A DNA stretch of 64,000 nt from Octopus sinensis. Its lineage: Eukaryota. The position numbers and the translations under genes are program-made. Below the pieces are notes generated by a model. The model ran no database searches and was not told the origin of the DNA. It saw nothing but the letters and a program-made list of their open reading frames with translations. Numbering within the stretch: position 1 is the stretch's first letter; the number at the start of each line of letters is the position of its first letter. Positions 38,401-41,400 of the stretch are shown here, in pieces. The DNA is taken from positions 806,001 to 870,000 of the forward strand of contig NC_043022.1 in NCBI RefSeq assembly GCF_006345805.1. The letters run 5' to 3'.

Positions 38401-41400
38401 ATAATAATAATAATCGTGAAGTATATTTTTTCACTTAAATGTGGCTAGCCCCTAAGGGTGGATGCTAGTGTAGCAGTAGCCCCAGGAGGACACCTCCTCC
38501 AGCTGGCTATTGACACACTTTCTGTGCCCTATCAGTATTTGCAAAGGGAAGCCATCCTTCCCGTCTTCAACCTGACATGATACACACGGACTCGAGTTTC
38601 AGGGTATTGACCCGTCATCAGTGTGTGACAATCATAGTTGTCGATGCAAAGTAGGCCTCCTTTGCAAATAATAATAATAATAGATACTTTGTACTCTAGG
38701 CACAAGGGCTGAAATATTTGAGTGAAGGGGGCCGGTCAATTGCATCAATACAGGGGCTCAACTGGTACGAATTGTATGAACCTCAAATGGAGGCAAAGTT
38801 GATCTGGAAAAATTTGAATTTCGAACTTAAAAAATGCTGCAAATCATTTTCTCAAGCCTGCTAACGATTCTGGCAGCTTTCCAATTTATTATTAATAATA
38901 ATAATAATGATAATCCTTTCTACTGGAAGCACAAGGCCTGAAATTTGGGGGAAAGGATTAAGTCGATTACATCGACCCCCAGTACTCAACTGGTACTTTA
39001 TTTATCAACCCCACCGAAAGGGTACAAAACAGTTCTATATTTAAGAGATGAGGAATTATGTACATTATTTACATTTGACGGACATTTGTCCTCATCTTGT
39101 TTGTTGTTGACACCTGAAGAAGGCTGGAGATGATATCAGCCGAAACATTAACAACAAACAAGATGAGGACAAATGTCCGTCAAATGTAAATAATATATAG
39201 GTACAAAAGTCTGAAATATTTGGGGTAAGAAGTTAGTGGATTACGTCAACCCCAGCGCATAACTGCTACTTATTTCATCAATCCCAAAAAGCTGGAGGAA
39301 ATATTGTGCAGCAGAGATAACAATTCTGCCAGAAATTTTGAGGGAGTGGGGTGAGTCAATTACATCAACCCCAGTGCCCAACTGGTACTTATCTTATTGA
39401 GCCTGAAAGGGATGAAAGGTAAAGTCAACCTCAACAGAATTTGAACTCAGATGGATGAGATGTCTGGCATGCTAACAGTTCTACCAGCTTGCCACTTTAA
39501 TGAGAAGAAGAATAATAATCCTTTCTACTAAAGAGACAAGGCCTGAAATTTGGGGAAAGGGGATATTCGATTACATCAACCCCAGTATGTAACTGGTACT
39601 TAATTTATTGACCCCTGAAAGGCAAAGTCGACCTCAGCAGAATTTGAACTTAGAACATGAAGACGGATGAAATACCGCCAAGCATTTTGCCTGGCATGCT
39701 AACCAATCCTTTCTACTGGAAGCACAAGACCTGAAATTTGTGGGGAGAGGGGAGTCGATTTGATTGACCCCTGTATGCCAAATTCCTCCTCTCAGGAATT
39801 CACACAATAAAATATAAATTTCCTTTACAAGAAATTTGTAAATTCCAAGTTGTGAACATTTTTGTTGGTAACTTTGCTTCAAAGGGGCCTCACTTTAGGA
39901 GTTACCTTTGCAAAAATCTTAGATTTTCTCCTAATAAAAGAACTGCTTGTTATTGCTATTGTAATAAGTTCTGGGGGTCTTATTTTTTCTTATTAAAACC
40001 TCAGAGACTGTTTAGGAAGAAATTACTGAATATTAAAGCCACAGTTTGCTCTGCTGGGGATTGCTTAGTTTCACCTCGTTTCTAGGCTCGCGTGGAGGGT
40101 GTCATCTGTTTGTAGTTTCGACTGTTCCGCTCAATCCACCTCTACAGTGTCGTGAAGTGTTTGCCTGGTTTTTCAGGTCGTGTTCCACTGCCCAAGCGCT
40201 CCAGTATGGCATCAATTGTGATGACCTACCTGCACATTAAACACATGTCCACCATGTTCCTCATGTGCTCTCGCCACGGTCCGTCATACGCTTTAGATGA
40301 CGACGGCACATACGAACCTGCGGACGAGAACGGCAACAGGAACCAAATCGAGGCCTCGCTTCCTGCCTCCATCACCAACTTGACAACAAATAGAACCACT
40401 GACGAATACGAAACAACATCCGAGCTCCTCCTTCATCAGCAACCCATTCAGCCTTCCTCCCCGTCTTCTTTTTCTTCTCTCCTCGCTCCTCCTCCTCCTC
40501 CTACTCCTGTCCATTCTCTTCCCTCTACTCATCCTCATCAGCAGCATACTCCTCAGGATAATCAAAACAACAACTTCTACGACCAACAACACAATCATTT
40601 CCGCTTATTTCATCTTTTCAATCGATCCGATCCTGAACCTCTGCCTTCAACGGAAGGTAATACTGACCACAAATTAGCCGCAATACTAACTGACCCCTAA
40701 TTACTCTAACAGCTCTTCCCATTTTCTCAGTGTTGCAATTGCACAAATTCTTCACCTACGCATTTTTCATTATCCCTTTTTTTTAAATAAACATAGGTTC
40801 TGCACACTTTCTCAATTTCTGCTGAGAAACAGAAACATTTCTATCAAGAATCTTCCAGGCTTGATCTTATTAGAATTCCTGCTGTTTCATTGCAATTCCT
40901 CTTACATTCTCTCTTTCCCTCCCCTTTTTTCCAGAGTTTCTCCCTTCATATTTCTTTTCTCATATTTTTCCCTTCAAAAGAAAACTAACCCCAAATTCCT
41001 CTGCCTCTCTAGCTCCTTGAGGGCTCTCTCCTTCACTCCAAGGCTCCCAAAGCTGCCACTGCACCTCAGATAAATTTTAGAACACTCCTCATTTTTATAA
41101 CAAAGAACCACAATGTTTTGCTGTGACTTCTTCATTAATCTTTTATTTTTCCTCTAACAATAATTCTTCCTGTTGTCTGCCAATTAAAAATTTGCTAGGA
41201 AATTCCTTTGTAGAAATTCCCATTACAAGATTATTTCACCATCCAGTGAATTCTGTAGAAATTTCTAGAAGTTTTAGATAAGCAGGGAAACATGGTTTTC
41301 TCCACTTCACTAAAATAGTTTAGTTGCAGCACAATGATGTACTTTTCATTCATGTTTTTCATTGTACTTTTATGTATTTTTTTTTATATACTCAAATAAT

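Follow-up and report, generated by a model that had tools for sequence, protein, structure and literature searches.

A conserved candidate cassette exon at the RH-PH linker in the gene of an octopus GRK2-type receptor kinase

The kinase gene and the exon candidate in its long intron

The DNA analysed here, referred to below as the window, is a stretch of 64,000 nucleotides (nt) from Octopus sinensis (contig NC_043022.1, positions 806,001 to 870,000 of the forward strand), the + strand of which holds most of a gene for a GRK2/beta-ARK-type kinase. Between exon I, which ends the RH (RGS-homology) domain, and exon J, which begins the PH domain, the gene carries an intron of 14,029 nt, and within this intron lies the 480-nt segment with which this report is concerned. 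The reading that we favour, and consider fairly probable, is that this segment, 40177-40656, is a real, evolutionarily old and alternatively used coding exon, most likely a frame-preserving cassette inserted between exons I and J. The features of the locus, together with the genomes in which the exon was found, are collected in Table 1.

The gene was mapped by tblastn with human GRK2, a query that served only for exon mapping. On the + strand, ten collinear exon segments between 8396 and 48110 matched GRK2 residues 182-589, with identities of 53-94%; the N-terminal ~180 residues of GRK2 either lie outside the window or were undetected by this search. As mapped, the exons encode an AGC-type kinase domain within the RH domain and, after the terminal helix of the latter, a C-terminal PH domain: exons I and J matched GRK2 chains over residues 499-591 (E = 4e-28), exon I aligned to residues ~499-548 of bovine and human GRK2, and a related product, P0024, bears the Pfam PH domain (PF00169). 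At 33821-33835 exon I reads LSESD where mammalian GRK2 has the clathrin-box-like LLDSD, a motif that is apparently not kept here. Comparison with solved structures of GRK2 puts the I/J junction near Gly555, in the short stretch that links RH helix alpha11 to the PH domain. The preliminary description of this locus, which had placed the insertion point between the kinase/RH lobe and the PH domain, was right in this respect.

All of the residues encoded by ten window exon segments (316/316), namely the eight exons before exon I and the start of exon I, were found as exact substrings of the O. vulgaris kinase A0A6P7TP13, as far as that sequence is given in the supplement of PMC8465341; this identity assigns the window to O. 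vulgaris or a very close relative. This protein (Ov-GRK1), termed octopus 'rhodopsin kinase', has 691 amino acids (aa), a mass of 79.6 kDa and no insert, and splice isoforms of the kinase are not discussed in the paper that describes it (PMC8465341). Judged by sequence, the host gene encodes an ordinary kinase of the GRK2/3 clade and is the same gene as the octopus rhodopsin kinase. The latter, under the name ORK, was reportedly described by Kikkawa et al. in 1998.

Table 1. Coordinates of the exons and of the parts of the candidate exon in the window, and genomes carrying the exon
Feature	Location	Strand	Remarks
Exon I	33821-33980	+	End of RH domain and first base of a Gly codon; donor GAAAAAG/gtcaga, phase 1
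Upstream intronic block	40050-40176	+	Pyrimidine tract, acceptor gcctggtttttcag, upstream CTCTAYAG with AG at 40146-40147
Candidate alternative cassette exon	40177-40656	+	480 nt, phase 1-1, 160 codons including two split Gly codons
Conserved module	40194-40301	+	36 residues, ~20 positions invariant in four species; invariant Cys
In-frame ATG, Met10 of exon peptide	40206-40208	+	Kept in 4/4 species; context ccAgtATGG in the window
Low-complexity middle	40302-40634	+	Fast-evolving; closes with His/aromatic-rich H..H.HF..FH.F common to both lineages
Exon end and donor	40635-40662	+	EPLPSTE and split Gly base, then G/gtaata; EPLPS(T/I)EG and GAAG/GTAA in 4/4 species
Read-through stop codon	40698-40700	+	Reached if the 40656 donor is unused; 14 codons beyond the donor
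Exon J, first PH-domain exon	48010-48158	+	Acceptor ccaacag/GTACAG, phase 1
Exon K, PH domain continued	49817-49933	+	Boundaries set by the spliced RNA-derived contig L010
Exon L, coding part (last exon)	51484-51630	+	End of PH domain and C-terminal tail ...EHRNSNGS*
Genome A	Window (Octopus)		Reference, exon 480 nt
Genome B	L001/L011 (two SRR runs)		Close relative, exon 93% identical, 483 nt
Genome C	L002-L007 (seven runs)		Distant lineage, exon 351 nt
Genome D	L008 (126-kb ENA contig)		Distant lineage, exon 351 nt

The preliminary description had proposed a 480-nt exon of phase 1-1, with an acceptor at 40177 and a donor at 40656, fitting the 33980 donor and the 48010 acceptor, and the sequence matches this exactly. 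The acceptor reads tggtttttcag/GTCGTG, with 40177 as the first exon base and gcctggtttttcag as its upstream context, and the donor reads ACGGAAG/gtaata, with 40656 as the final exon base; both the AG (tggtttttcag/GT) and the GT (GAAG/gtaata) stand in a plausible context. The donor of exon I and the acceptor of exon J are both of phase 1, and a Gly codon (GGT) arises at each junction, whether the exon is in or out. Starting from the split codon g(33980)+GT, the reading frame is open over the whole exon, the encoded peptide ends in EPLPSTE-G, and the stop-free stretch around the exon extends from 40152 to 40700 (182 codons).

A second conserved AG (CTCTAYAG, window 40140-40147) was observed upstream of the acceptor, at a distance of 29 nt in the lineage of the window and of 27 nt in the distant one. 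Its use as the true acceptor was considered and rejected, as it would add 29 nt in the window, leading straight into a TGA, and 27 nt in the distant lineage, which is inconsistent between the two. It probably belongs to the branch-site or pyrimidine-tract region, or else is a decoy or alternative 3' splice site.

Among the segments of the window's + strand that are open in phase 1-1 and bounded by AG and GT, the exon is the longest. The length of the open frame is nevertheless weak evidence when taken alone, since the stretch is C/T-rich (GC skew -0.37), a composition that depresses stop codons, and since six open reading frames (ORFs) of at least 150 aa, mostly derived from microsatellites, are present in the window. 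When the 14-kb intron was block-shuffled, an open segment of at least 480 nt appeared in 6 of 300 shuffles. Long ORFs of low complexity or microsatellite sequence (CA, TA and CT repeats) at 2009-2461, 6726-7262 and 52218-52772 also mark ORF length as unreliable in this genome. The stop-poor composition, the five other long ORFs and the outcome of the shuffling are what speaks for a frame open by chance in a C/T-rich intron and devoid of function. To this explanation we attach next to no probability, and it is already refuted by the comparison presented below, in which frame, phase, splice sites and peptide are kept in four genomes at a saturated synonymous distance; it is the cross-species conservation that is the decisive evidence for a real exon.

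The exon in other cephalopod genomes

A peptide search of a collection of 5.8 billion predicted proteins yielded two ORFs resembling the exon and an alignment search a third, all of them on genomic contigs, which end in microsatellites or other repeats as is typical of genomic assemblies. The acceptor is identical (CCTGGTTTTTCAG) in all four genomes and the donor GAAG/GTAA is likewise present in 4/4; the exon lengths of 480 (A), 483 (B), 351 (C) and 351 nt (D) are each divisible by 3, and all are open in the same phase. A and B differ by a single exon indel, of 3 nt. The segment from the acceptor to Met10 is also open and in phase with exon I in the four genomes, the two lineages differing there by a 3-nt indel. 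Splice sites, phase, a length divisible by 3 and an open frame are thus kept in four genomes from two deep lineages, so that the frame-preserving coding exon foreseen in the preliminary description is borne out, as is, for these four cephalopod genomes, the conservation of both its splice sites, which had been named there as a check.

Other searches added no further member. A metagenome scan with the back-translated conserved peptides gave 224 pattern hits, none of which was confirmed as an ortholog; an exact look-up of the window ORF 40206-40697 gave no recorded protein; and three marginal profile-search hits (P0072-74) were discarded as unrelated tandem-repeat proteins.

Conservation within the exon is uneven. 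Three parts are kept in both lineages, namely the 36-residue N-terminal module, the His/aromatic-rich stretch and the terminal EPLPSTE-G, whereas the middle is unalignable between A/B, where it is rich in Pro, Ser, Thr, Gln and Asn, and C/D, where it consists of Thr/Ala runs and poly-His. At the 3' end, a blastn island (40634-40660, corresponding to L008 10372-10398, 96% identity) covers the last codons and the donor, and the similarity stops exactly at the donor. Upstream, the identity between A and B is 94-98% from ~125 nt before the acceptor through the module, as compared to ~80-88%, with indels, elsewhere in the intron; the last ~37 nt of this upstream block are alignable to the distant species. 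Strongly conserved flanking intron is typical of regulated alternative exons.

These data also bear on a different use of the segment, as an alternative terminal exon. Exon I would then be spliced to 40177, the 40656 donor would be ignored, and translation would run to the stop at 40698-40700, with polyadenylation after AATAAA 40786, yielding a GRK without a PH domain. The ORF does continue for 14 codons beyond the donor, and the AATAAA 86 nt past the read-through stop (40786-40791), which permits such a use, is retained in the close species. Both the donor GAAG/GTAA and the preceding EPLPSTE are conserved in 4/4 genomes, however, while the tail peptides are unrelated between the lineages and neither they nor the AATAAA are conserved in the distant one, and we consider a terminal exon very unlikely.

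When the whole window was compared by blastn with 35.7 kb of the D contig, the only islands outside microsatellites were 40140-40309, 40634-40660 and exons J, K and L. They lie on one strand of the D contig in the order of the window, and ~15 kb separates the cassette from exon J downstream of it. At the amino-acid level, exon J shows 100% identity with P0016, a product of the same contig as the distant cassette ortholog, and the PH/C-terminal region as a whole is 93% identical between A and D. Given that this figure resembles the >92% identity between the O. vulgaris sequence and the rhodopsin kinase of a bobtail squid (PMC8465341), the C/D/E lineage may be decapodiform.

Nei-Gojobori counts were used to compare the proportions of synonymous (pS) and nonsynonymous (pN) differences. 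For cassette codons 5-42, comparisons of A or B with C or D gave pS of 0.70-0.85 and pN of 0.12-0.15 (0.70-0.82 and 0.12-0.14 for the window alone against the distant species), and for the constitutive exons J-L of A and D the values were 0.74 and 0.029, respectively. The cassette and the constitutive exons are at the same saturated neutral distance, and the amino acids of the module are clearly constrained, although ~five times less than those of the PH domain. Within lineages, omega was 0.15 in the module and 0.43 in the rest of the cassette for C versus D, and 0.43 over the whole cassette for A versus B. The low pN of the module relative to its pS and the within-lineage omega values are evidence of purifying selection on the encoded peptide. 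Taken together, the conserved acceptor and donor, the frame and phase kept despite a replaced middle, and the synonymous bias of change in the conserved part indicate that 40177-40656 is a coding exon.

An independent gene nested in the intron, or a conserved non-coding element (an enhancer or a non-coding RNA) that happens to be open, would also account for a conserved island in this place. The exon does stand alone in a long intron, and the gene callers of public assemblies reported it as a stand-alone ORF. A non-coding element does not agree with substitutions in the module that are overwhelmingly synonymous (pS 0.7-0.8 versus pN 0.13), and neither variant agrees with conservation that spans exactly from splice acceptor to splice donor while the tails of the stand-alone ORFs are unconserved; no conserved islands besides the GRK exons were seen, and an Rfam search with the exon gave no meaningful match. 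We therefore hold this explanation, in either form, to be highly improbable.

The peptide itself has no recognised relative. Pfam gave only sub-threshold, low-complexity matches, and a PDB profile search found nothing better than E ~1. In an AlphaFold2 model built on the four-sequence alignment, a helix was predicted in the module (residues 11-31, pLDDT, the model's per-residue confidence, 55-63) and a second, short one near NHFRLF, while the remainder, including the middle (40302-40634), was predicted to be disordered. An amphipathic membrane helix, considered as an interpretation of the first helix, is not supported, its hydrophobic moment being low (0.06-0.22). The 'disordered linker' of the preliminary description thus holds for most of the peptide, which is of low complexity and predicted to lack structure, but does not extend to the conserved ~36-residue module with its predicted helix.

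Two functional motifs that had been pointed out in the same description fared less well. The poly-Pro ligand for SH3, WW or EVH1 domains (APPPPPTP, or PTPPPPPPTP in the close species) is missing in both distant orthologs, and the tyrosines in acidic context (DGTYEP, DEYET) are limited to the species of the window and its close relative. Being confined to A/B, with Thr/Ala and poly-His in their place in C/D, these motifs are not selected features. Two other tyrosines are invariant, Y17 (MTYLH) and Y37 (P.Y.LDD); of these, Y37 alone precedes a run of acidic residues.

Some further observations concern the variability of the exon and its surroundings. The two contigs of the close relative (L001 and L011) differ at five positions in 2723 nt (726, 729, 762, 803 and 2519); four of these fall within the 483-nt exon, where three affect third codon positions and the fourth replaces Pro by His, and the flanks (2240 nt) contain one. 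This clustering reflects either unusual polymorphism of the low-complexity middle or an effect of assembly. The intron is otherwise full of microsatellites and of copies resembling short interspersed elements, and the exon belongs to none of its repeat families, for which reason an origin from a repeat or transposon was rejected. A near-perfect hairpin, similar to a miniature inverted-repeat transposable element or a foldback element, lies ~1 kb upstream of the exon (39061-39197; 48-nt arms, 98% complementary, 41-nt loop). Direct and inverted repeat families of the intron were located at 38722-39749, at 44440-44647 and 46640-46847, and at 37447-37513 versus 44805-44862 and 46927-46986; inverted copies lie at a distance on either side of the exon region, and TG/TA microsatellite tracts are abundant.

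Probable inclusion between exons I and J

If used, the 40656 donor must join something in phase 1, and exon J is the sole conserved downstream candidate. We infer both the inclusion of the cassette between exons I and J and its alternative use. Skipping is implied by the O. vulgaris kinase; as that published protein consists of 691 residues without an insert, the exon is taken to be alternative and not constitutive. The cassette reading is favoured because the AG and its pyrimidine tract are conserved and because the segment from acceptor to Met10 is open, phase-matched to exon I and different between the lineages by 3 nt. By a rough estimate, these features of the acceptor-to-Met segment favour an internal coding exon over a 5' untranslated region about sevenfold.

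Several observations weigh against inclusion as a cassette. With its short, interrupted pyrimidine tract and a donor (gtaata) below consensus, the exon might be used very little, though the same features also fit an alternative exon. In genome D, exon I was not found in the 10 kb upstream of the cassette, so that only the downstream half of the synteny is shown. The AlphaFold2 model is of low confidence (mean pLDDT 52), and the helix predicted in the module is hydrophobic and not clearly amphipathic. The amino-acid constraint is stronger after Met10 than in the 8-9 codons before it, which fits a translation start.

Transcript and protein collections add two more such observations. No protein joining the cassette to its GRK flanks was found in the 5.8-billion-sequence collection, only stand-alone ORFs, by two word-indexed searches (peptide and alignment) and an exhaustive profile search of 1.84 billion representatives. 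A peptide search with exons I and J showed that the collection is also without the canonical cephalopod I-J junction, and for this reason the missing cassette-junction protein says nothing about expression. The contig L010 (positions 1-1046, Logan ERR12945499), orthologous to window 48010-51700, is the one RNA-derived contig found, with exons J, K and L correctly spliced and a poly(A) tail; it begins with 80 nt of the intron preceding exon J, and contains neither exon I nor the cassette. The species from which it comes is ~25% diverged from D at synonymous sites. Its intronic start could reflect pre-mRNA, the path chosen in assembly, or transcripts whose start lies shortly before the PH exon.

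The last of these possibilities touches on an additional (and not mutually exclusive) scenario, in which the segment serves as an alternative 5' coding exon. Transcription would start inside the 14-kb intron, at a site close upstream of 40177 or in an unconserved non-coding exon that is spliced to the 40177 acceptor; translation would begin at ATG 40206, and the 40656 donor would be joined to exon J. The product, of ~285 aa, would comprise module, spacer, PH domain and C-terminal tail but lack the RH and kinase domains, and would be a natural analogue of betaARKct. Met10 is invariant, with a purine at -3, in 4/4 species, and the stronger constraint downstream of it, the high conservation of the ~125 upstream nt between the two close species, and L010, in which another species has the PH exons behind intron and not behind exon I, all agree with such a start. 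What the scenario leaves unexplained is the perfect conservation of the AG acceptor and pyrimidine tract, according to which the exon must be internal, and it has no need of an open, exon-I-phased segment between acceptor and Met with a 3-nt indel. Furthermore, no second conserved island that might represent a first exon or promoter was detected in the 6 kb upstream in the window or in the 10 kb upstream in the distant genome. In our judgement this start is rather unlikely, and the inclusion of the exon as a cassette between exons I and J is the better account of the data.

Possible action of the insert and relation to known kinases

GRK2-family kinases shut off G-protein-coupled receptors, and the recruitment of GRK2-type kinases to the membrane depends on the PH domain and on its packing against the RH domain. 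Upon inclusion of the cassette, the donor of exon I (33980) would be joined to 40177 and the 40656 donor to exon J (48010); a segment of 160 residues would enter the linker that joins RH helix alpha11 to the PH domain, and the ~691-aa kinase would become an isoform of ~851 aa. The segment would contribute three selected parts, the hydrophobic and basic N-terminal module of ~36 residues, the His/aromatic-rich stretch and the terminal EPLPSTE, and between them a disordered spacer, rapidly evolving and of variable length. According to the model, the module probably forms a helix bearing the invariant Cys. We infer that the insert would act as a flexible tether with one conserved docking helix, carrying this Cys, and a His/aromatic patch. 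The helix might dock on the RH or PH surface of the same molecule, on the membrane (perhaps after acylation) or on a partner protein, while the spacer would let the PH domain keep its normal packing or loosen it. Placed at the RH-PH hinge, the insert could change the coupling of the kinase to the binding of G-beta-gamma and PIP2 by the PH domain.

A bolder interpretation, which we put forward tentatively and deem unlikely as a whole, is that cephalopod GRK2-type genes keep an ancient hidden exon that gives rise either, from an internal start at the conserved Met, to a kinase-less regulator made of module and PH domain, which would bind G-beta-gamma and PIP2 much as betaARKct does, or to a cassette whose new element, a helix with its Cys together with a His-rich part, re-targets or gates the kinase. 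Palmitoylation, or the sensing of metal or pH, would be examples of how such an element acts. As part of the same tentative interpretation, the lineages keeping the exon would be as diverged as octopus and squid, as suggested by saturated synonymous sites and a PH region 93% identical.

What appears to be new here is that the gene of a well-known kinase has a conserved alternative exon which has apparently escaped annotation. The host gene is in cephalopods the retinal rhodopsin kinase, expressed also in light-sensitive skin and in suckers. If the interpretation is correct, an alternative insert of 117-160 residues at the RH-PH hinge would be a new route to distinct GRK2-type isoforms, and the same would be true of a kinase-less PH isoform. 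Expression of the isoform in photoreceptive or neural tissue, or the existence of the kinase-less product, would add to the significance. The 36-residue conserved module, having no known relatives, offers material for binding studies.

With regard to known systems, we know of no GRK2/3 isoform in which an insert separates the RH domain from the PH domain, and the literature searched contained no report of an isoform of this kind in GRK2-type kinases. The exons of the host gene align with mammalian GRK2/GRK3 (PDB 1OMW, 3CIK, 6C2Y) over the kinase domain, the RH terminal helix and the PH domain (GRK2 ~182-591), whereas the octopus insert has no Pfam or PDB relative. The octopus rhodopsin kinase A0A6P7TP13 is the product of the same gene, but the protein described, of 691 aa, is without the insert.

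The variants of GRK4 and GRK6 arise from short N- or C-terminal exons that alter membrane-targeting or regulatory regions, in the GRK4/5/6 clade. They provide a precedent in the family for alternative exons, from which the present case differs in being an internal insert of 160 residues, in the GRK2/3 clade, between folded domains. Splice variants of GRK4 (alpha-delta) and of GRK6 (A-C) are both cited in PMC3307776.

The product of an alternative start would share the PH domain and tail, without the kinase, with betaARKct. The latter is artificial, an engineered C-terminal fragment of GRK2 that sequesters G-beta-gamma, and to our knowledge no natural isoform of this kind has been described. 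The tissue-regulated cassette exons of signalling proteins are typically frame-preserving, flanked by conserved intron, and mostly disordered with a short conserved element and fast evolution of length. The octopus exon resembles them in these general properties, but at 480 nt it is much longer than is typical of them.

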